Shown: positions 1,969 through 64,000 of the stretch, one piece after another
Position numbering within the stretch: the stretch's first letter is position 1
How the letters are laid out: every line of letters starts with the position of its first letter
Assembly (NCBI RefSeq): GCF_041956535.1
Contig: NW_027192222.1
Span: forward strand, 207,477-271,476
Direction of reading: 5' to 3'
DNA length: 64,000 bases
From: Calcarisporiella thermophila CBS 279.70
Lineage: Eukaryota; Fungi; Calcarisporiellomycota
Position numbers and translations under genes: made by a program
Notes under the pieces: generated by a model
What the model was told of the DNA's origin: nothing
Database searches by the model: none
The model's input: only the letters and a program-made list of their open reading frames with translations

Positions 1969-3993
1969 TCAGAAGAAGTTACGAGAGCTCCTACTTGAGG
2001 GCGGTGGGGCTGGGAATACAACCACGTTCTTATTTTTCCCTTCCTTGGGGCTCAAGTCTGGCGAATCCCCATCCAGCTTTATGATCGCCTCCCCGGACGA
2101 TGAGGAGAGAAACGAGGACCTTCCCTCCTGTCCAGCATCGCCGACACTCAGCAGATTCGTGCTGGGTGCGCTATTGGAGGGTGCAAGAGAGCTGGAAGAG
2201 GCTGCCGCCTGATTCTGGCCAGACGAGACGAATTCTTGGGACTTTGAACGGCGATGGAAGGGCAAAGGTGGCAGTGGCTTGTCTTTTGGGGCCGAGACAG
2301 CGGGTGGGTATTGTAGAATGCTTGAAAAAGGCTTCTGAGATGTCAGAGACTCGTATATTGGAGAGGGTGCATCCACGAGTGCTGAGAGCACTGAGAGGGT
2401 GCCGTACGAGTCGCCGCTTGAGAGGGTGTCGGAAGAGACGACTCGCGCAGGGGAGGTGGGGCTGGAGAGTGGAGAGAGCGGGAGAGGTTTGAATGTGAAG
2501 GAGGGGAGCCGGGGACTCTCCGACATGGAGCCGGGCTGGGAGGCACCCCTCGGGTTGGAGGCATTTCCACTGGCCCCGCTGGAAGCTGCAGCGGCAGCTG
2601 CAGTAGCTCCAGCAGACAAAGGGGCAACGTTGTAGGTGGTGCCCGCATCTCTTCCTATTGTTTCAAACGGGAGACGGAGAGAGGCCGGGAAGTTGAGGGA
2701 GGCTAATCGAGAGGCTGAGCTGGAGGAGGAGCTCATCGAGCCCTTTCTTTTCTCAGACAGTAGCAGCTCTTGGAAAGGATGCTTGTACCGCCTGTAGTAG
2801 CGATAGAGGAAGAACCCCACTACCAATGCTACAGCCGTGAGAGCCCCTAAGGTGGCCCCCACAATAACGCCAATGTTGGGCTGCTGCGACTGGAAAGCGT
2901 TGCCGTTCACGTTCATGTCGGCGTAGGTGGAGGTGCCTCTTGGTGGGGAGACCATGGTCGCAGGGCCGGGAACCATTGAAATTGTCGTAGGATCCACCCC
3001 GCTGACCTTGGCTGAAGTGCTCAACACCCCTTGGCGTGACGTGGTGGGGGAGGCGGGATCTGCGCCCGAAGGCGTGATCCCGGGAAGCCCAGGACTATTC
3101 GTGCCACGAGTCGAGCCAGCGCCTGGCCTAGGCGTATTTGAGTTGGCGTTGGCATCGGCCGGTCTGCGTGCTGTGGCGGAGACGGGCGATGAAGGAGTCA
3201 CGATGACGCCTCTGATGGTTTTGGTGATGTTGGTATTTGGGATGAAGATCGTGAGGGTTGGTATACTTTCCAGAGGTATGGAGGGCCGCTTGCTGCGGCT
3301 GACGAGGGGCGTGCTTGGCACCGACAAGCTGCTCATGAGGGTGTGCAAAGGGCGGGTGGCCGGGATGAGGTTGTCATCGGCGCCGACGGTGGTGGTGACG
3401 GTTGTGGTGGTGGTCGCGGTGGTGGTTGTGGTTGTGGTGGAAGCGAGAGCCTTTTTCGAGGCCATGGAATGGCGAGGAGCATCCTTCTTGAGCGAGCCGT
3501 ACGCTTTCTTTTTCCTTGTTCCCTTGTGCCCCGCTTTGCTCACGCTGCCAACCTTCTTTTCCCCCCACCCCCTCTCCTCCAATGGCATTGCGCCCTGCAC
3601 TTCACCCCTAAATGCCCCTCGTATCATCCACATTTTTGCCTCAGATTCCCCGGCCGGCTTCGGTGTATTTTTAGACGGCCGCGCGGCCGCTTCACCATCC
3701 TCCTGCCGCGGCAGCTGCGGCCGCCTCTCTGCTACTCTCTCGCCCGCTTTCCCGATGCCGCTCGCCGACTCCCCTGGCGGAATGTCGCGCCCGTTCTCTG
3801 GTCCCGCTGCTCCTTCCTTTTCTGGAAGACGCTGTTTCGGATTCCGTTCGCGGCACACCGCGCTCTCGCATTCGGGAAAGCACTTTCTTCGCCACCTGCG
3901 GCATATGGCGCGGCGGCACTGGCATATTGAGCTGCCGTCGCCCCGCCTGGCGAGCCGCGGGTATATTCGTGTGATTGAGGCCATTATGTACAT
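1969..3993 (-). CDS. Ser/Thr/Pro-rich single-pass membrane protein (Mid2/mucin-like cell-surface sensor candidate); start uncertain
   Basis: 674-aa ORF with Thr/Ser-rich region, one TM helix (IGVIVGATLGALTAVALVVGFFLY) followed by basic RYYRRYK, and an S/P-rich tail. No clear signal peptide at the ORF start. Confidence 0.65.
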   Translation of the reverse strand: MYIMASITRIYPRLARRGDGSSICQCRRAICRRWRRKCFPECESAVCRERNPKQRLPEKEGAAGPENGRDIPPGESASGIGKAGERVAERRPQLPRQEDGEAAARPSKNTPKPAGESEAKMWMIRGAFRGEVQGAMPLEERGWGEKKVGSVSKAGHKGTRKKKAYGSLKKDAPRHSMASKKALASTTTTTTTATTTTTVTTTVGADDNLIPATRPLHTLMSSLSVPSTPLVSRSKRPSIPLESIPTLTIFIPNTNITKTIRGVIVTPSSPVSATARRPADANANSNTPRPGAGSTRGTNSPGLPGITPSGADPASPTTSRQGVLSTSAKVSGVDPTTISMVPGPATMVSPPRGTSTYADMNVNGNAFQSQQPNIGVIVGATLGALTAVALVVGFFLYRYYRRYKHPFQELLLSEKRKGSMSSSSSSASRLASLNFPASLRLPFETIGRDAGTTYNVAPLSAGATAAAAAASSGASGNASNPRGASQPGSMSESPRLPSFTFKPLPLSPLSSPTSPARVVSSDTLSSGDSYGTLSVLSALVDAPSPIYESLTSQKPFSSILQYPPAVSAPKDKPLPPLPFHRRSKSQEFVSSGQNQAAASSSSLAPSNSAPSTNLLSVGDAGQEGRSSFLSSSSGEAIIKLDGDSPDLSPKEGKNKNVVVFPAPPPSSRSSRNFF

Positions 3994-5497
3994 GAAAAGG
4001 ATCCTTTGTCAAAAAGGAGGCTGTTTGAATTCACTTGCACATGTAATGGGTTGAGACAGTGACTAATACAGATTGAAGGAACGGAGGGTGTTTGCAATCT
4101 ATGTGGAAATGAGCGTTCGAGTTATTCTTGCGGCCGCCATGGCTCGAATGCATTCGGGTACCAACCTCTCTACTAGACAGCGCGTGGAGAACCTGGGAAG
4201 CGGTAAGGAGAAAACAAAGGAGCAGAAAAGGGAAGGGAAAGCGCGGAAAAAACAAGCGACGCTGAGCAAAACGAGTGCGCGGCGCGAGAAAAGGAAACTT
4301 GTTTGCCGCAACCGGTTCTGGCCCATTGTTTGCCGCGATTTCGTCGCGCTGCGCTAGGCTTTCCGACCCATCCTCTGCCCTGGCCTCGCTGTCAACCCCG
4401 CTCTTTTGTTTGAAACTCTAATTTTTAATTCGACTCGTTTTTGGGCAAACCGCCTCGGGTGACTGGACCTTGTTGACGGGTTTGGGCGACCGTCGCCGGG
4501 CGGGAGGCAAGGGCTCCACGCCAACCAGCGGCAGCGTGGATTCCGAACAATAACAAAGCTAGGGCGCATGGCGAAGGGCTGGGAGAGCGCGAGGGAGAGG
4601 AGGGCCCCCGTCGCCGCAGGCTTGCGCTGCGCTCCCCGTAAATGGGTGAGAAAACTTTGCATCAACTCTAAAGTTCAGGCTGAGCTCTTTTCCGCAGCGC
4701 TTCGATTTAGAATCAACCGAGCACCGCGCTAGGAAAGAGAAAGTCTAAAGGAAACAGGAACTTCTGGGATCCAAACCCGCCGGCTCACAAACAACTTGAT
4801 TCCCAGAGAAGCCTGTGGTTACAGAGCGATCAAGCCATAGCTCGGCGTCCTTGATGAACACGGCTCTCCCGCTCAATGGCCCACGAGCCATATGCGCACC
4901 AGATTAAGTTCAAGCTTCTCCTCTTCCTCTCATATCACCGCAACATTTCCCATTCTATAGCTTTCGCGCTAGGTGAAAAATGGTGATGGATTTCGGATGG
5001 CCATCAACAAAGACAACCCCGTACTCCGCTCGATAGAGGGTCGGCCCGCGATCAAAATGTCAATCCTATACCTGACGGCCAGCTTGATTGGATAAAATAG
5101 GCCTCAGGTAATGGAGTACAAAGTATGCTTTCGAAAGCTCTTGGTCTTGTGTTATAGGAGGCTTTATTGGATAGCATCAAAAAAGGACAATAAAAAAAGG
5201 AAAATTTGAGGTTATTTTTTTGGCTGCTATGGTATATTAGAGAAAAACTGGACTTCGTCGACTTTCAGAGATATAGCGCCTTGGTGTATATCCAAGCGGT
5301 GTGAATCAATTGCAAATCAACTTGCCAATACTATGACTCCTCAATCCTGTAAGATTGTGTTTATTGCCCATGGTACTTGGGAAATCGTATCGGTATCATG
5401 TCGTATTTGAAGCGACTATTTATAGAAATGACGAACAAAACAGTGCTGAGCACGTATGAACACTTGAAATGCGATCTAGAACCATCAGGAAATGGGT

Positions 5498-19924: not shown

Positions 19925-20515
19925 TTAGAAAGAAACGAAGGCACTGTAGGAATGCGGAGAGTTGAGGTTGGTGAACATGGATTTTGGCGCAATCGAGTCG
20001 ATGGTGAGAGTGGCATTGGCGGGACGAACATTGGCTTTGACATCATTGACAAACTCCTCGAGGCTTTGGTACGGCACTCCTTCAAATTCGAAGAGGCACT
20101 GGTGAACATTAGTGCCACTGCAGTTTGTAGTTGCGCATCCTACACCTTTATATTTGGATGCCATAAGGAGCATGAAGATCGCGTCAGTGCTCTGGGGGTT
20201 GGGGTTATTGAAGTCGTACTGGGAGAGACCCATGGTGTAGATTTTAGTGATCGCTTCCTTCCAAGAACTTAATCCCTTAACATTAAGAGAAACAAGGCCA
20301 GCGGGAGTCGGAGTCTTTTGCAAGCACAGCTGTGCTTTCGCCAGAGAAGCTTTCTCAAGATCCACATTCCATGGGAGTGTCTTCACACCATGTGCTTGGC
20401 GCAGAGTATTGATCAACTGAAGGACATATTCTGGCGACTCCGCCTGACGTTTGTGAGGTGCTCCCAGAGCAAGCGTAAAGGTAAGAAACACGGAGGCCAG
20501 ACCTAGGAATTTCAT
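19925..20515 (-). CDS. Secreted CAP/PR-1-fold protein, paralog 6
   Basis: MKFLGLASVF..., INTLRQAHGVKTLPWN, YDFNNP, GVGC. Confidence 0.88.
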   Translation of the reverse strand: MKFLGLASVFLTFTLALGAPHKRQAESPEYVLQLINTLRQAHGVKTLPWNVDLEKASLAKAQLCLQKTPTPAGLVSLNVKGLSSWKEAITKIYTMGLSQYDFNNPNPQSTDAIFMLLMASKYKGVGCATTNCSGTNVHQCLFEFEGVPYQSLEEFVNDVKANVRPANATLTIDSIAPKSMFTNLNSPHSYSAFVSF

Positions 20516-21387
20516 TTTTCGATTAGTTCGAGGAAGAAGCGATGGAAAGACTACCGATGCGACAGCTGCCCTTTTTATAAGAGAAGGTCGCACTCGGAGC
20601 TACGCTCTCCCATTTCCCTCTCTGAACGACATATTTTGTGTCCGAGGCCGTGAAAGAAGCTAAGGTTACTCAGCGCTCTCACCAAAACTCAAATTATGCT
20701 TTTTCTAGCAATACTAGCACTATAGTCACGAATAAGCTTCTCTAGAAGGTGGCTGATACTAGTGGCAAGATTAAGCTCCGCAGCCCCAAAACCCATTGGA
20801 CAAAGGGCGGTGCAATTTAACAGCACTGCAGTGCAACCCTACTAAGCAAACTCTCCTTGATGTAAATGAGATGATTGATCACAGGTACACCGTCACCTAA
20901 ACACTAGCGGCTCTGCAAACTTGTACTTGTTCAATTTCCAGTAGAAATGGCCAGATAATTGACCGACCCGGCCGTGTTAAGCTGCTCAGGTTCATAAAGG
21001 GTTTCTCCAGTTGTTGTTGAAAACTTTACCAGTCTTTCCATATTGAATATTGTGTTATTACAGAGGTATAATGTTGCGTTAATTAGCGATATATCTTGAC
21101 AAAAGCTAACACTAAATTACTCAAATAATTCCGCGAAAAAAAAAGTATGCAGAGGTACATTCTCATAATGAATATTAAGTAACATATGCGTCAGTACGTC
21201 TTGTCTCTAGATTGAGTGCTTTGACTAGTTTCTGAGCCCGCTTTATCTTCCTATCAAATGAAGCAAAGACCACTTCACGTACAAACCGGTGCATTCTTTG
21301 CGTTTTGCATACTATCACTTTTCCTCTGCCATCAGTTTACTTAATTGTAATTGAAGCAAACGGCTATTTATTTAGCATCGCTATTAT

Positions 21388-21812
21388 TTCGCAAATATCA
21401 AAAGATTTTTTCCAAACCGTTGCTACAGCGTGCTTGAAATATAATGATTCTACGTACAGAAATGGTAGCTATATTCTTTCCTTTATTGTTTTGGCTATTC
21501 AAGATAGTTTTGGAAAGAGGAAGCAATATTTTCAATGTAGATGCACATTATCTTAACTGTGTGACAATCTCGTGGGGGTTATGATATCAATCTCTCTCTC
21601 AAATGATCGAATGCATTTCTTAATCAAACAGAGCCGGGTCTCTTTCTCTTCCTTCATACACTAATGACAGTAGCGCACATAAGTGGGATCGTCCCGCGAG
21701 TAGTCAGGTTGATATGTCCGCCCATCCGAGGAGATATTTGGAATATCTAATTGACAATCCGGCTGCCTTAGTTGTCTGAAAGAATTATCCATTTTGAGTA
21801 GGTTTCAAGCCA
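21388..21812 (-). pseudogene. Degraded NB-ARC (NLR) fragment paralogous to the NLR at 62289-64000
   Basis: The reverse complement aligns with 62820-63280: ggcttgaaacctactcaaaatgg vs ggcttgaagcccgctcaaaatgg; ggacatatcaacctgactactcgcggg vs ggacatatcattttgactacacgcggg; gaaaatattgcttcctctttcca vs gaaaatactgcttcctctttcca. Contains stops and indels. Confidence 0.85.
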
Positions 21813-22050: not shown

Positions 22051-22641
22051 TCAGGAAGAAAATCGAGCACTGTAGGACAGCGGAGGGGCGAAGTTAGTTT
22101 TCATTGACGTGGGCACAGTCGGGTCGAGGGTGATTGTGGAATTGGGAGGGTGAACATTGGTCTTGATGTCGTTGATAAACTCATCTATGGTCTGGTATGG
22201 CACCCCTTCAAAATCGAACAGACATTGGTGAACATTATCCCCACTACAACTCGTGGCCGCGCATCCTACACTTTTATATTTAGGCACCACGAAGAGAATG
22301 AAGCCCAAGTCGGACGATTGAGGGTCAGGGTTGTTATAGTCGTATTGAGAGAGGCCATAGGTATAGACTTTCATGATAGCATCCTTCCAGGAGCTAGCCC
22401 CAGTATATGCAAGAGAAGATGTATTAGGAGGTGTTGGGGCACCATCCACGCACATTTGTGCTCGTGTCAGAGAAGCTTTCTCGAGATCCACGTTCCACGG
22501 GAGTGTCTTCACACCATGGGCTTGACGGATGGTGTTGATCAACTGAAGGATATATTCTGCTGACTCCACCTGCCGTTTGTGAGGTGCGCCCAAAGTAAGC
22601 GTGAAGGTAAGAAACACGGAAACCAAGCTTAGGAATTTCAT
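22051..22641 (-). CDS. Secreted CAP/PR-1-fold protein, paralog 7
   Basis: MKFLSLVSVF..., INTIRQAHGVKTLPWN, YDYNNP, SVGC. Confidence 0.88.
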   Translation of the reverse strand: MKFLSLVSVFLTFTLTLGAPHKRQVESAEYILQLINTIRQAHGVKTLPWNVDLEKASLTRAQMCVDGAPTPPNTSSLAYTGASSWKDAIMKVYTYGLSQYDYNNPDPQSSDLGFILFVVPKYKSVGCAATSCSGDNVHQCLFDFEGVPYQTIDEFINDIKTNVHPPNSTITLDPTVPTSMKTNFAPPLSYSARFSS

Positions 22642-25117: not shown

Positions 25118-26048
25118 ATTGAGATAGGGTTGATTGTCGATCACAGGAAAAGGAGAGCACGGGCTTATAAAGATGCCAAATTTTCACGAGGAGGGAGCCA
25201 CGTTCTGCGTACTTTAAATAGGCTGTGGTGCGGGGAGGCACTCACTGAGGTTGATTGGCCAATAACTCTGGCTCTTTCCGAGGGAATAAATGGGAATTTA
25301 AAAGTAGTTGAAAGGGGAAATGAAAAAAAAAAAATAGAGGAACGCATAAAGAATGGAAACCAACATGAAGCTAGCTAAACGATAAAGAAAAGTAAAATAA
25401 CCGCTTATCATAAAAAATGACTTCATAGCAGCATAGGAGCATATACCATAGATTACCATGACTCTCAAATTTTTCAATGCTTAGCCCACATTCTTTTAGC
25501 TTTTCAAACAAATCGGAAAGTCCTCGTTATACGCTCATAGAAGATGTCAATTCGATCAGACCCTGCTCCAAATTTGGCCCATAAACAGTGCATATAGGTC
25601 CGTGTCTCTTATAAGAAACGATAGAGAATTTGTAATTAAACTTTGGGAGACAAGCGAACAAGAGATAAGATTCATATGCTATAAACGTAGTTACGTAGCT
25701 ATAATACATTCTTTTTATATCTTAATTTTCAACCTTTAAAAAGAAAATCGACCTATGTCCTTTTCACTTTTTAGACCTGTGGTTTAGATTACTTCTATTA
25801 CAAGGTTTTACAATTATTAAAAAGGATTAATATTTCCCAATACAAGAACATACCTACCGGTTGAAATAGACCTTATTTCCTGATGTATTGTAAATAGATT
25901 CAAGTATTTTAATGAAAAAGGTTAGTAATATTATTAGTTGAAGCAATAGTTTTGAAGTTCATTTAAATCTTGCAAAAGATAAGATGAATTGTATTAAAAT
26001 GAGGGATATCACGAAACTAAGGGATACTTTAAGCAATATATTCCATCA

Positions 26049-26760
26049 TCATACATCGTCCAGTGATTGACTTGAAAATTTAAATCTTTTCAATGAACTT
26101 TCTGGTATGTCCGTTTTCACCATTACATCGGCCAAATCTTTGATCGCTTCATGATGATACGGTCAGCATAGGAATGATCAATTCCATCAACTCGAAGTAG
26201 ATCTCTTCATTTAGCATAGTTAATATCCAAAGGGCCAACAACAGCAAACCGATACGCTCTGCCCGCAAATGGACAAAAATAATTAAGCCAATTTGTCCTG
26301 TCAACAATTCCAGACCGCTCTGGAAGTTCAAAGTTTCCAGCCTCATCAGGCATATAAAGTACGAAAAAATCTCTATACGATGCAGTTTTATCGCTCTCCC
26401 TTTGGTAAAGCTCTTTACTGAGTTGTGGCTCAGTAAGATGCTTCTACTGATGAACCTCACTCAGAAATTCATCCTTAGATCCGAGGTTTAATCCCAAGAA
26501 AGAGTCACCGGATGGTGCGGAGGTTCCGTTAAGTATACAATGCCTGCCTTCCCTGATATTAACAGTGCTAAATTCGCATTTACGTTCCATTTTTCAGGTA
26601 GGCGATCACAAGACTTTGTATTTTCCCATTGAGTAGCGCATTCTAAACTCAAGTGATGATTTATATTTTTTATATTACCATTTAAGCGTGCCTCCTTATA
26701 AATGTCTGAAATATCTCTAAGCTCTCCTTCAACAGTGAATGCATCAGACAGTTTGTCTCC
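26049..26760 (-). pseudogene. Crinkler-type C-terminal relic: REase-fold domain + helix-hairpin-helix, disrupted by stops and frameshifts
   Basis: Hand translation: ISDIYKEARLNGNIKNINHHLSLE.../...HCILNGTSAPSGDSFLGL...EVHQ*KHL...DFFVLY...LPERSGIVDRTNWLNYFCPFAGRAYRFAVVGPLDINYAK*RDLLRVDGIDHSYADRII/KDLADVMVKTDIPESSLKRFKF. Confidence 0.8.
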
Positions 26761-27374
26761 AGTAGTGTCCTATTTACAGACTATGGTAATGGAATATACA
26801 TTCATAAGAAAGTGGCAGCTTCTGTAAGAGTGCAATATTATTATGAGCTAGACAGTATCTTTCCATTGATAACATTAACACTCTGCCAAGTGATAATGGT
26901 GTTAAAAATTTAATCTGCTTTCTCTTGCCTTAGTTGCGAGGTCAACAAGCCGGTAGCCTTTTGAAATCGTAGCGTGACAGCGCATTTTGTTTAATATCTT
27001 TAGACGGTGTATAATGATAACTGCCATAACCCTAAATATTCTACTTAGACAAGCTTGAGATTAAAATAATAATAGTAAACTGTTATTGAAATATCGATTT
27101 GATTCAACATCAAAACTAGCAACTATATCTTCTGATAGTGTGCTGACTATAGTTAAGATTGGCCGGCGTGTAGTCGGCAAATTATTTGGCAAACTCTTTG
27201 GAGAAATAAACAAGGGTACTTGTATATATTTTTCGACGGATCGATTATGATGTGCACAATTGTAGATACACGTGTGTATATAAGTCGGCTCTCCTTAGAT
27301 GAGAGTCTCGCTTTAATTTCTTTAATCCCCTTGCATTCAATTTTAACCTCTATTAGCTCATTCGTTCCTCTTGT

Positions 27375-27929
27375 ATATATATATATATATATATATATAT
27401 GCNNNNNNNNNNNNNNNNNNNNNNNNNNNNNNNNNNNNNNNNNNNNNNNNNNNNNNNNNNNNNNNNNNNNNNNNNNNNNNNNNNNNNNNNNNNNNNNNNN
27501 NNNNNNNNNNNNNNNNNNNNNNNNNNNNNNNNNNNNNNNNNNNNNNNNNNNNNNNNNNNNNNNNNNNNNNNNNNNNNNNNNNNNNNNNNNNNNNNNNNNN
27601 NNNNNNNNNNNNNNNNNNNNNNNNNNNNNNNNNNNNNNNNNNNNNNNNNNNNNNNNNNNNNNNNNNNNNNNNNNNNNNNNNNNNNNNNNNNNNNNNNNNN
27701 NNNNNNNNNNNNNNNNNNNNNNNNNNNNNNNNNNNNNNNNNNNNNNNNNNNNNNNNNNNNNNNNNNNNNNNNNNNNNNNNNNNNNNNNNNNNNNNNNNNN
27801 NNNNNNNNNNNNNNNNNNNNNNNNNNNNNNNNNNNNNNNNNNNNNNNNNNNNNNNNNNNNNNNNNNNNNNNNNNNNNNNNNNNNNNNNNNNNNNNNNNNN
27901 NNTATATATATATATATATATATATATAT
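27375..27929. repeat. (TA)n microsatellite flanking a 500-N assembly gap (27403-27902)
   Basis: TA runs on both sides of the N block; both runs end in ...tatatatgc. Confidence 0.95.
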
Positions 27930-28362
27930 GCATTTACAAATCGTATTAATATTTTATATTCTGGTAAAAGTGTTGGCAAGGGATTGCAAATTCGGGTATA
28001 ACAATTTACCTCAATTTTATGATGCATTCAAGGATCCCAAAAACAGAAGCAAATTTGAAGAGAATAGGATAAGGTCGTATCATGAGTGCTATAACGTCAC
28101 CGCAAATAATCCAACTACTGATGATGAATCTGTATCTATGGAAGATGTTGATACTTGCTGTTGTGCGAAAGTCAACAATCTACTGAATACTTATCCTCAT
28201 TGGGCTGTGGAATCTGATTTTATTCTCAAATTGCCTGAGATTGTTAAAGATATTGGAGATGATTGTAGAGTAGTGGGACATGTCATGTATGAAACATATG
28301 GATATGTTAAGGACATTAAACAGTGTCTGAAAAGTTGTGATTCCACTTTAATAAAATATTAA
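27928..28362 (+). CDS. Small secreted Cys-rich orphan protein (144 aa, 8 Cys including CCC)
   Basis: ATG directly after the TA repeat; signal-like MHLQIVLIFYILVKVLA; open to TAA at 28362. Confidence 0.7.
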   Translation: MHLQIVLIFYILVKVLARDCKFGYNNLPQFYDAFKDPKNRSKFEENRIRSYHECYNVTANNPTTDDESVSMEDVDTCCCAKVNNLLNTYPHWAVESDFILKLPEIVKDIGDDCRVVGHVMYETYGYVKDIKQCLKSCDSTLIKY

Positions 28363-61528: not shown

Positions 61529-62288
61529 GAGATTTCAACTACAAAAAGAGCAGAATATAATTCTAAATTAGGTTTTAAGTATATTTAGAGTGTCAATTAA
61601 TACAAATCCATTGCCTATGTGGCCGTTATTTCTACAATGGATCACGCAAAAATATAAATTGCAGAGCCCGCTGATACACGTCGTTTCGTCGTTACAGAAA
61701 CCAAGTTAGTAGCGCACGAGAGAATAGAATAACCTAATTGCACTATGTCAAGAGGATTTTATTGGATATTTTTACGGCCATTATCCACCATTGATGATAT
61801 CAAGTTAACAGATGTGAAATCAATTGCTATATAGTCAAAGTCTCTGATAAGAGTTCTATTATTTTTTTGGCATAATGTATCTAAAGATTGCAGTAAGCTA
61901 CTATTCCGATTAAATCAATAAAAGTTTACTATTGCTGCCATATTCCTATTAGATAATTTCGCTTCAATAAACATTTATGTCTCCATAGAAAAAACGTGCC
62001 ACCAAATAACTGGTTTTTAAAAAATAATTATTAAGAGAAGATAGAGAATTGAGAAAAGGAGCATTGGTAAGTTTTTAGGATGAAAATCTCTCAATTTTAC
62101 ACATTTTACTAAGGATAGAGGTTTTTTGACTTATTATTTTAATGCGTAAGGAGGCTTGTATTATATAAATACGATTTCCCATAAAATCAACTATCGGAGT
62201 CTTGTTTGGGGTATTAATTTGAAACGATATTATCAGCAAATGGAAAGTACCACTAACCGATGTTAGTATAATCCGCTTTCTTGACCGA

Positions 62289-64000
62289 ATGTCCGCGCAA
62301 ACATCCAATAATAGTGGAAATGTGCATGCTGAGGCAGGTGCACATATTAATGTTGGGAACATAAGTTATAATTTTTTGTTGGGTATGTAGAAAGTTAGAA
62401 AGAAAAGAACAGAAAACTAATGTTCTTTTTTCGGGCATTTACTAGAAGCATGGAGCTCCTCAAAGTTTACCAACTCGAACAATGAAGTCAAAACCACCTT
62501 TTATGGCGTCCCACATGAAAATAAGGCCTTTGTAGAGCGCCCTGACATTTTCAAAAAGATGGAAGATGCACTTTTCGCAGGTCCTAGCGGAGGCTGTAAA
62601 ATCGCAGCACTCAGTGGGTTAGGTGGGATGGGAAAGACCCAACTCATGTTGCGCTTTTGCTACCTCCATCGTACAAAGTATGATTTCGTGTTCTGGCTCA
62701 AAGCCGACAGCTGGATAATGGCGGCTGACTCGTTCCGCAGCCTTGCTATGTACCTTGGTATTCCAGAAATGGTTTTGGAGGAAAAATCAGAGGACAAAAC
62801 TATCGCATGGGTTCGAAATTGGCTTGAAGCCCGCTCAAAATGGCTACTTCTCTTGGACAACTTGGATGATAGAATCGCCAAACAGATATTTCAAATATTG
62901 CCTCGTGAAGGTGGACATATCATTTTGACTACACGCGGGCCAATCCCATCTAGGTGCGCAACGATCATTAGTGTGGGAAATATGAAGGAAGAAGAAGCGC
63001 TCGTGGCACTACTTGGTGAAGAGATGTATTCAATTGACAGAGCGGGTACTCGGTTCCATAACGCGTACCAAATAATTGCGCAGTTTGAGTTTATGCCACT
63101 TGCAATAGAGATTGCGCGCGCCTACATCGAAAATACTGCTTCCTCTTTCCAGAGCTATCTTGATCAACTTAAAAGGAATCGAGAAAAACTGCTTTCGTAT
63201 AAGGATGAAGATTCGCTAGGAGATTATGAGCACACAATAGCAACAGTTTGGAACATTTCTTTTGATCGTGTGCGAGAATTCCCGGCAACTGTGCCGATAC
63301 TTGAAATTTGCACTTTTCTTCATCCGGATGAAATTCCAACACGTCTCTTTGAGCGTCAATTTGTTGCACTCGATCTCTGCTCAAAGTCACAAGCATTGTC
63401 AGATCAACCATTAGGATATGAAGATATTCAAACAGCATTAGCGGTGTTAAATAAATTCTCACTTGTCACAATTACAATTAATGAAGGAGACAGTAATAAT
63501 AAGGAGACAGTATGCAATACGTTAAGGATGCATCGACTCGTGCGTGAAGTGATCTATGCTACAATTGAGGAGTGTAGAAAGGTTAATTGGACATGGAAAT
63601 TAACTGAAGCGCTCAATATCGAGACAGAAAATTTAAATGCTTACGATACCAAAGATAGATCAGTTATGCAAAAATACCTTTCGCACATACGATTTTTCGT
63701 GGAATTACTTGAGAATCTCAATGAGAAAGCTATGCTTTGCAAAGATCATGTCAAGTTGTTAATTCATACAGTATCATACCTGCGTGAAAATGGAGTATAC
63801 GATAGTACAGAAAAACTAGCTGAGTTTTCGGTAATCATTAGTGGAGATATTTATGGACCTGAGCACCCCAACACGGCCAAGTCGGTTAACGAACTGGCCA
63901 TCCTCTACTCAGATATGGGCAAGTACGAACAGGCGGAGCCGCTGTACCAGCGAGCCCTCGTCATCCGAGAGAAGGCGCTGGGACCTGACCACCCTGACAC
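62289..64000 (+). CDS. NLR-like STAND protein: short N-terminal amyloid-like motif + NB-ARC + TPR repeats; truncated by the window end
   Basis: Not in the ORF track because there is no stop in the window. Exon 62289-62382, intron 62383-62445 (GTATGT..CTAAT..TAG), then an open frame with GLGGMGKT (Walker A), WLLLLDNLDD (Walker B), IILTTR, FMPLAI, MHRLV and 42-aa TPRs GPEHPNTAKSVNELAILYSDMGKYEQAEPLYQRALVIREKALGPDHPD. Confidence 0.92.

Follow-up and report, generated by a model that had tools for sequence, protein, structure and literature searches.

The window analysed here is a stretch of 64,000 nucleotides from the fungus Calcarisporiella thermophila CBS 279.70 (G000:C32:207477-271476), at whose very end lies the 5' part of a gene for an NLR (NOD-like receptor) that has an NB-ARC domain and tetratricopeptide repeats (TPR). 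The original prediction held that this NLR has no folded N-terminal effector domain and starts instead with a HET-s-like amyloid signalling motif placed on an exon of its own. The gene is laid out as follows.

62289..62382, plus strand: coding exon 1, 94 bases (31 codons and 1 base, phase 1), the entire N-terminal module
62298..62366, plus strand: motif core, residues Q4-S26, from alignments A4 and A5 (8 NLR N-termini and 2 caspase tails)
62383..62445, plus strand: intron 1, 63 bases (donor GTATGT at 62383, branch site CTAAT, acceptor TAG)
62446..64000, plus strand: exon 2, with the linker, NB-ARC, DUF7779 and the first TPR units, reaching the end of contig C32
62562..63188, plus strand: NB-ARC domain (Pfam PF00931, E 2.5e-08, 33.9 bits, cut-off 23.5)
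62616-62639, plus strand: P-loop G-x-G-G-x-G-K-T inside the NB-ARC domain, read from the translation
63288..63572, plus strand: DUF7779, the helical/winged-helix module placed after NB-ARC in NLRs of this class (PF25000, E 2.7e-07, 31.2 bits, cut-off 27)
63780..63998, plus strand: first TPR_10/TPR_12 sensor repeats, cut by the contig end (TPR_12 E 4e-18, TPR_10 E 4.4e-16)

Translation returned exactly the exon 1 peptide given in the original prediction. An in-frame stop codon lies at 62220-62222, the first ATG after it in this frame is at 62289, and the splice from exon 1 to exon 2 stays in frame through to the P-loop and the NB-ARC domain. A public protein model (P0137, 550 amino acids) has the same start and the same exon 1 splice as the window NLR; its residues 1-31 are the exon 1 product, and an upstream folded domain, which would have spoken against the prediction, is absent from it. 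Spliced genes were searched one exon at a time, P0137 being the sole joined NLR sequence that we used. PF00931, PF25000, TPR_10 and TPR_12 each exceeded their Pfam cut-offs, the architecture of an NB-ARC NTPase of the STAND class (signal transduction ATPases with numerous domains), and a Pfam search of exon 1 alone matched no family. The N-terminus reads as had been claimed, with a motif of about 25 residues and a linker in front of the NB-ARC domain.

It is very improbable that this gene model is wrong, i.e. that the NLR starts upstream with a folded effector domain, or inside exon 2, and that the motif is not N-terminal. Although ab initio prediction may be all that stands behind the public model, the in-frame stop lies only 69 bases upstream of the ATG, and TAP42, correctly named before as the upstream neighbour, stands on the opposite strand, divergent and only about 760 bases away. 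Moreover, the upstream DNA is poorly conserved among copies of the gene, independent public models of two paralogs (P0045 and P0044) start with the motif, and the splice signals are canonical.

Contig C32 stops at the final base of the window, so that the NLR gene is cut within its TPR array; an intact paralog on contig C10 extends for about 1150 residues. The TPR units are 126 bases long and stand head to tail, with 84-88% DNA identity both within and between NLR genes (C2:36885-37525; window 63855-64000), which probably explains why the contig breaks inside the gene. They recall the highly conserved internal repeats of Podospora NLRs.

The motif in sister NLRs

Paralogous copies on C10, C2 and C17 retain exon 1 and share the position of the intron, which is in phase 1 in those on C10 and C17. 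The DNA identity of exon 1 to three paralogous copies is 70-78%, compared with 38-63% for the upstream DNA and 44-71% for the intron, and even in the copy that is 69% identical the conservation of exon 1 exceeds that of the intron. The two copies with an intact-looking exon 1 have indels of 3 and 6 bases in it. In the C2 copy ATC replaces ATG and there is an in-frame stop, and in this copy and one of the C17 copies the NB-ARC frame breaks; both look decayed.

A profile built from four copies also picked the first exon of NLRs that are more distant, on C18, C17, C6 and C8, and of a truncated one on C1, and those that were checked are each followed by an NB-ARC domain 42-46% identical to that of the window. 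Altogether the motif, which we call family A, begins at least 8 NB-ARC NLR loci whose mutual similarity is only 42-88% and whose NB-ARC regions share only 42-50% identity with that of the window, and the conservation among paralogous NLRs on which the original prediction hinged was thus found. It consists of about 25 G/N-rich residues with alternating hydrophobics, sits on its own phase-1 exon and has the consensus Q-[TSV]-x4-G-x-[VI]-x-A-x2-G-x2-[IV]-[NS]-x-G-N-[FIV]. With the motif profile the window NLR scores 53.9 bits; no true instance falls below 24.9 bits, and the background stays at or below 8.5 bits in about 250 kb searched in six frames, including the rest of the window. At 39 bits or more the motif stands on 7 of 14 NB-ARC matches in the genome, where 14 is a lower bound, as are all our counts of NLRs and motif carriers in the genome. 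On the sequence evidence, the motif is not a chance feature.

Beyond the genome the motif was elusive. A search of 1.84 billion representative proteins with the family A profile A5 gave nothing convincing outside C. thermophila, and an ESM Atlas feature search with NLR residues 1-40 gave no usable match. The three non-C. thermophila proteins that profile A5 did match are repeat-rich, and we regarded them as artefacts.

Two further regions of NLR sequence were noted. An NB-ARC NLR with an open frame of 1268 amino acids (C1:911680-912264, plus strand), located about 10 kb from the caspase gene VTP21DRAFT_383 described below, has no family A motif upstream, nor one of family B (see below). In the window, 20906-21812 on the minus strand matches the NB-ARC region of the NLR at 64-90% DNA identity and holds no long open reading frame (ORF); judged by these features it is a decayed NLR relic. 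It lies between two paralogous, secreted-looking CAP-domain (PF00188) genes at 19925-20593 and 22051-22641. Base composition swings strongly along the window, GC being 0.27 at 26001-28000, 0.60 at 2001-4000 and about 0.43 elsewhere.

Caspase-like and patatin-like candidate effectors

The original prediction had found no cognate effector in the window and had pointed to the rest of the genome. There, the tail of a caspase-like protein of bacterial type surfaced among the weakest matches of the first NLR-motif profile search. This protein, caspase 383, is encoded by a single ORF of 351 amino acids on C1 and is 100% identical to VTP21DRAFT_383. It matches Peptidase_C14 (PF00656, E 4e-16), and the columns of its His (G-H) and Cys dyad are invariant among 26 homologs. 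In its AlphaFold2 model the domain is confident, whereas the linker and tail are disordered, with a predicted local distance difference test (pLDDT) score below 50 over residues 305-351. The top structural matches in Foldseek are MALT1, which is the best, metacaspases and legumain (E about 1e-10 for MALT1 and metacaspases). With a Peptidase C14 fold and a His-Cys dyad, caspase 383 is a predicted protease. Its C-terminal tail carries the family A motif in a single copy, 10 of 23 residues being identical to the window motif without a gap; several NLR paralogs are as close to the window motif as this tail is, and among the NLR partners of caspase 383 the window NLR scores highest. When the genome was searched with a degenerate DNA pattern built on five positions of the NLR motif, 8 matches were found versus 7 for the reversed control; of the 8, 2 are NLR N-termini, one is the caspase 383 tail and 5 are chance matches within ordinary ORFs.

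A search of the genome with a broad motif profile returned, among the matches listed, the training set and one further gene, which encodes a stand-alone patatin-like phospholipase:

C16:694917-696363 (L061:918-2364), plus strand: patatin-like phospholipase gene, first exon in phase 1, family A motif N-terminal

Positions 1-21, 30-112 and 129-170 of the patatin family PF01734 are matched on three successive exons (2-4), each piece singly below the cut-off, and the nucleophile elbow G-x-S-x-G is present as G-T-S-T-G. The features of a patatin-like phospholipase are thus in place, and the protein is a predicted enzyme. Its exon 1 has two possible donors, after L061:987 or after L061:1026, both of which keep the frame.

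A second caspase, caspase 327 (VTP21DRAFT_327), is a paralog of caspase 383 with a like layout. Its predicted partner is a second, related motif, family B, which starts three tandem NLRs on C2 (57006, 61582 and 65506) and one NLR at C11:565241; the one family B NLR that was checked has the order NB-ARC-DUF7779-TPR-ankyrin. Outside the NLRs, the family B profile finds its best genome match in the caspase 327 tail. We trained hidden Markov models (HMMs) on NLR N-termini only (eight for family A) and scored the effector termini against composition-preserving shuffles of them, with the following results.

Caspase 383 tail: family A HMM 17.5 bits, reached by 0 of 20000 shuffles; family B HMM 1.0 bits
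Patatin N-terminus (exon 1): family A HMM 25.7 bits, 0 of 20000; family B HMM -0.5 bits
Caspase 327 tail: family A HMM 5.8 bits, 64 of 20000; family B HMM 14.2 bits, 0 of 20000

The weak cross scores indicate that the NLR-effector pairing is specific, and the scores with the two families that each caspase paralog matches its own NLR subfamily. Co-variation of receptor and effector has been reported for subfamilies of the HET-s-related amyloid motif (HRAM) (PMC4518210). When the genome was searched with the two caspase tails, only the tails themselves were found among the matches listed. A complex prediction for three NLR N-termini with the caspase tail scored 0.02, which neither supports nor opposes a pairing.

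These scores bear on the view that exon 1 is a low-complexity leader kept by NLR paralogy and that its resemblance to the caspases and the patatin is a compositional coincidence. Such a view could draw on the shortness and G/N-richness of the motif, on genome-wide E-values above 1 for the effector matches and on the two NLR copies that look decayed. We nevertheless hold it to be very unlikely, given that shuffles of the same composition never reached the real scores (0 of 20000, three times), that the matches sit exactly at the termini of cell-death-type enzymes, that the two caspase paralogs reciprocally match different NLR subfamilies and that exon 1 is conserved above the intron even in the 69%-identical copy.

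The search for other classes of effector came out differently. The genome has a single HeLo domain gene, and neither motif family is present in it:

C38:7175-7831, minus strand: HeLo domain gene, ORF of 388 amino acids at L056:1003-2169, PF14479 matched over its full length at 179-180 bits

HeLo-like (PF17111) and gasdermin (PF04598) had no match in the genome, and no HeLo, gasdermin or Bell effector bearing the motif was found in it. Of the effectors that had been suggested for a genome search, then, HeLo, gasdermin and Bell proteins did not turn up with the motif, and what did were a C14 caspase-like tail and the first exon of a patatin gene. The absence of a cognate effector from the window was borne out, since the effectors are located elsewhere, on C1 (caspase) and C16 (patatin), and effectors with a matching motif do exist in the genome.

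The caspases have relatives of interest. A third paralog in the genome (C39:19129-20178; L034:4129-5178) is interrupted by TGA, has a divergent tail and is flanked on one side by a transposase-like ORF. In Endogonales, caspase homologs are built in the same order, an acidic linker and a G/N-rich tail following the domain, but they differ in sequence. Outside fungi, the nearest relatives of the NLR, like those of the caspase, are bacterial. Among bacterial homologs of the caspase the closest (P0014, 38% identity), on a contig of a Blastocatellia metagenome-assembled genome (L059, 5296-13156), also has a C-terminal extension. Its gene row, kinase-ankyrin, caspase, unknown and ParA-like-TIR-WD40, is typical of conflict systems, and no clear matching NLR motif was found in this neighbourhood.

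Weighing amyloid-type signalling

The observation behind the original prediction is, as far as the sequences can tell, confirmed, and its interpretation is supported. We consider it probable, at roughly 0.6, that the window NLR is the receptor of an NLR-to-effector network built on a short shared amyloid-type motif. General traits of amyloid signalling are present, namely an NLR N-terminus that consists of the motif only, the motif at an effector terminus, a disordered monomer and many receptors to few effectors. The same motif recurs on the terminus of separate effectors, caspase 383 and the patatin, and caspase 327 does likewise with family B. The motif thus appears to behave like an amyloid signalling motif, and its sharing between the termini of receptor and effector suggests amyloid templating. 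The motif in sister NLRs, the effector matches and the identical start and splice of the public model together lend computational support to the reading of the gene as a probable amyloid-signalling NLR, with the amyloid step itself as a proposal.

Caspases and MALT1 are activated by induced proximity on filaments. In the mechanism that we propose, a ligand would bind the TPR sensor and the NB-ARC domain would oligomerise, crowding the N-terminal motifs and nucleating a cross-beta fold. This fold would template the identical motif of the effector, and the resulting polymer would cluster the enzyme. Induced proximity could then activate the caspase and, in the same way, the lipase, and regulated cell death or defence would follow, with the motif subfamilies keeping the signalling channels apart.

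Several observations weigh against amyloid-type signalling. In Pfam (HET-s_218-289 PF11558, RHIM and Ses_B), searched with E up to 10, the motif was unmatched, with noise only at E about 0.1, and profile A5 had no match among PDB chains with E up to 10. The genome-wide E-values of the effector matches are not significant alone (1.99 and 1.25), and their significance comes from the shuffle tests and the location of the matches. The match of caspase 327 to family A is weak. The patatin has its motif N-terminally, where C-terminal placement is usual, and an ambiguous exon 1 donor. The neighbours of the caspase and patatin genes are unrelated genes, with no motif-bearing NLR adjacent, and the only NLR about 10 kb from caspase 383 is without the motif; adjacency of receptor and effector genes, frequent though not obligatory in amyloid systems, is thus not seen here. 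Around five caspase genes of Endogonales we recognised no NLR whose N-terminus matches. Finally, the start, splice and expression of the NLR rest on sequence logic and a public model.

Some of these points would fit a shared motif that is a homotypic or adaptor-binding peptide recruiting effectors without amyloid, whether by beta-strand addition in a finite complex, through a common third protein or at a membrane. Co-occurrence and specificity data show pairing and not the physical state of the complex, known amyloid-motif profiles do not match, each effector has a single copy of the motif, and that of the patatin is N-terminal. Against this, the motif agrees with known amyloid motifs as described (PMC4518210, PMC9815663) in its composition (G/N ladders, alternating V/I and a G-N arc at the end), in its length, in standing at the extreme terminus and in being disordered as a monomer, and no folded adaptor domain is attached. 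Recruitment by a non-amyloid peptide strikes us as unlikely, though less so than a compositional coincidence or a wrong gene model.

A wider form of amyloid-type signalling can be put forward tentatively. It would be a pathway resembling the inflammasome, with NLRs switching on caspase-fold proteases and a patatin by prion-like templating, through at least two orthogonal channels, A with TPR NLRs, caspase 383 and the patatin, and B with ankyrin NLRs and caspase 327. This pathway might have arisen before or outside Dikarya and was possibly inherited from bacterial conflict systems; the proposal includes that the caspase-plus-tail architecture is common to Endogonales and that the nearest other relatives are bacterial.

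The host belongs to Calcarisporiellomycota (Fungi incertae sedis in the NCBI taxonomy) and so lies outside Dikarya, in agreement with the earlier guess of an early-diverging fungus outside the described range. For NLR amyloid signalling there are descriptions from Ascomycota and inferences from Agaricomycetes, and it has also been found in filamentous bacteria. In the literature we found no report of amyloid signalling in Calcarisporiella or Mucoromycota-grade fungi, and none of fungal C14 caspase effectors with such motifs. Among early-diverging relatives Mucoromycotina are the best studied, and NLRs are said to be few in them (PMC9119436). What appears to be new here, as a signature in the sequences, is a known architecture outside the previously known fungal groups, together with the effector types. 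If true, the mechanism of amyloid signalling would extend to Calcarisporiellomycota, and two effector classes, the C14 caspase and a patatin whose motif is N-terminal, would be new with such motifs in fungi. The genome would also offer a natural two-channel system for direct tests of motif specificity, with motif peptides short enough for direct fibril, seeding and solid-state nuclear magnetic resonance work. A link from NLR to caspase via a self-templating polymer would be the logic of the animal inflammasome, and if fungi have a form of it that rests on a peptide motif, one could test whether polymer-driven caspase activation arose repeatedly or is ancient.

Comparison with known systems

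The original prediction had placed the motif in register with HET-s repeat R1 and had proposed scoring it with profiles of known motifs. Using the published HRAM positional rules (PMC4518210), we found that positions 8, 10, 16, 19, 20 and 21 fit the window motif; G at position 19 and N at position 20 each occur in 9 of the 10 aligned motifs, in keeping with the invariant G and the large polar residue of HRAMs. The register fails at position 5, where a hydrophobic residue is expected and a polar or variable one is present, and at position 15, where R/K is replaced by H/N/S/Y/F/V. Position 18, expected to be hydrophobic, is mixed (V/I/A/S/T), and positions 3-5 are not conserved among paralogs. 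The profile search of Pfam gave no HET-s, RHIM or Ses_B match. Because the Pfam and PDB profiles miss the motif and the HRAM rules are only partly followed, 'HET-s-like' expresses only a resemblance, and membership in the HET-s/HRAM family is not demonstrable.

The resemblance nevertheless extends to the layout of the system. In NWD2/HET-S of Podospora and other Ascomycota, as here, the NLR N-terminus is only a motif of about 21-25 residues that recurs on a separate death effector, a G-N arc follows alternating hydrophobics, and each receptor is paired with its own effector through motif subfamilies. That system differs in its effector, a HeLo protein with the r1/r2 pair of motifs where here a caspase or a patatin has one copy, and in its occurrence in Dikarya, whereas here the host is non-Dikarya and the NLR and effector genes lie apart. 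Another comparison is with the HRAM-like NLR12/PNP_UDP system and the basidiomycete NLR05/08/22 motifs, in which a single copy on an enzymatic effector is matched by an extreme N-terminal motif of the NLR (PMC9815663), and many NLR copies face few effector copies whose genes are not co-localised (PMC9815663). Both are precedents for single-copy motifs on enzymatic effectors and for non-adjacent layouts of many NLRs to few effectors (PMC9815663); the effector domains and the phylum are other than here, and the motif sequence is not detectably similar.

Among bacterial amyloid signalling sequences (BASS), a motif is found on a CHAT metacaspase (bioRxiv 10.1101/2020.01.06.895854). There, as here, a caspase-clan protease with a C-terminal motif has an NLR partner (bioRxiv 10.1101/2020.01.06.895854), but the protease is of the CHAT type, whereas here it is a Peptidase_C14 protein, encoded in a eukaryotic genome with introns and with no operon-like pairing. 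The PP/RHIM motifs of HELLP and of RIPK1-RIPK3 share with the present motif that one short G/N/Q-rich element with a hydrophobic-polar-hydrophobic-G core stands on both partners. Their core G-phi-Q-phi-G is missing here, being replaced by x-[IV]-[NS]-x-G, with N/S for Q, the first G absent and no Pfam RHIM match. A further likeness is to the animal inflammasome (NLR-PYD/CARD-caspase-1) and to the BCL10 filament with MALT1, in which, as would be the case here, a nucleated polymer under a STAND receptor concentrates a caspase-fold protease. In the inflammasome and in the CBM (CARD-BCL10-MALT1) complex the polymeriser is a death-fold domain, whereas here it would be an amyloid-type peptide of about 25 residues, so that the relation is one of analogy and not of homology.

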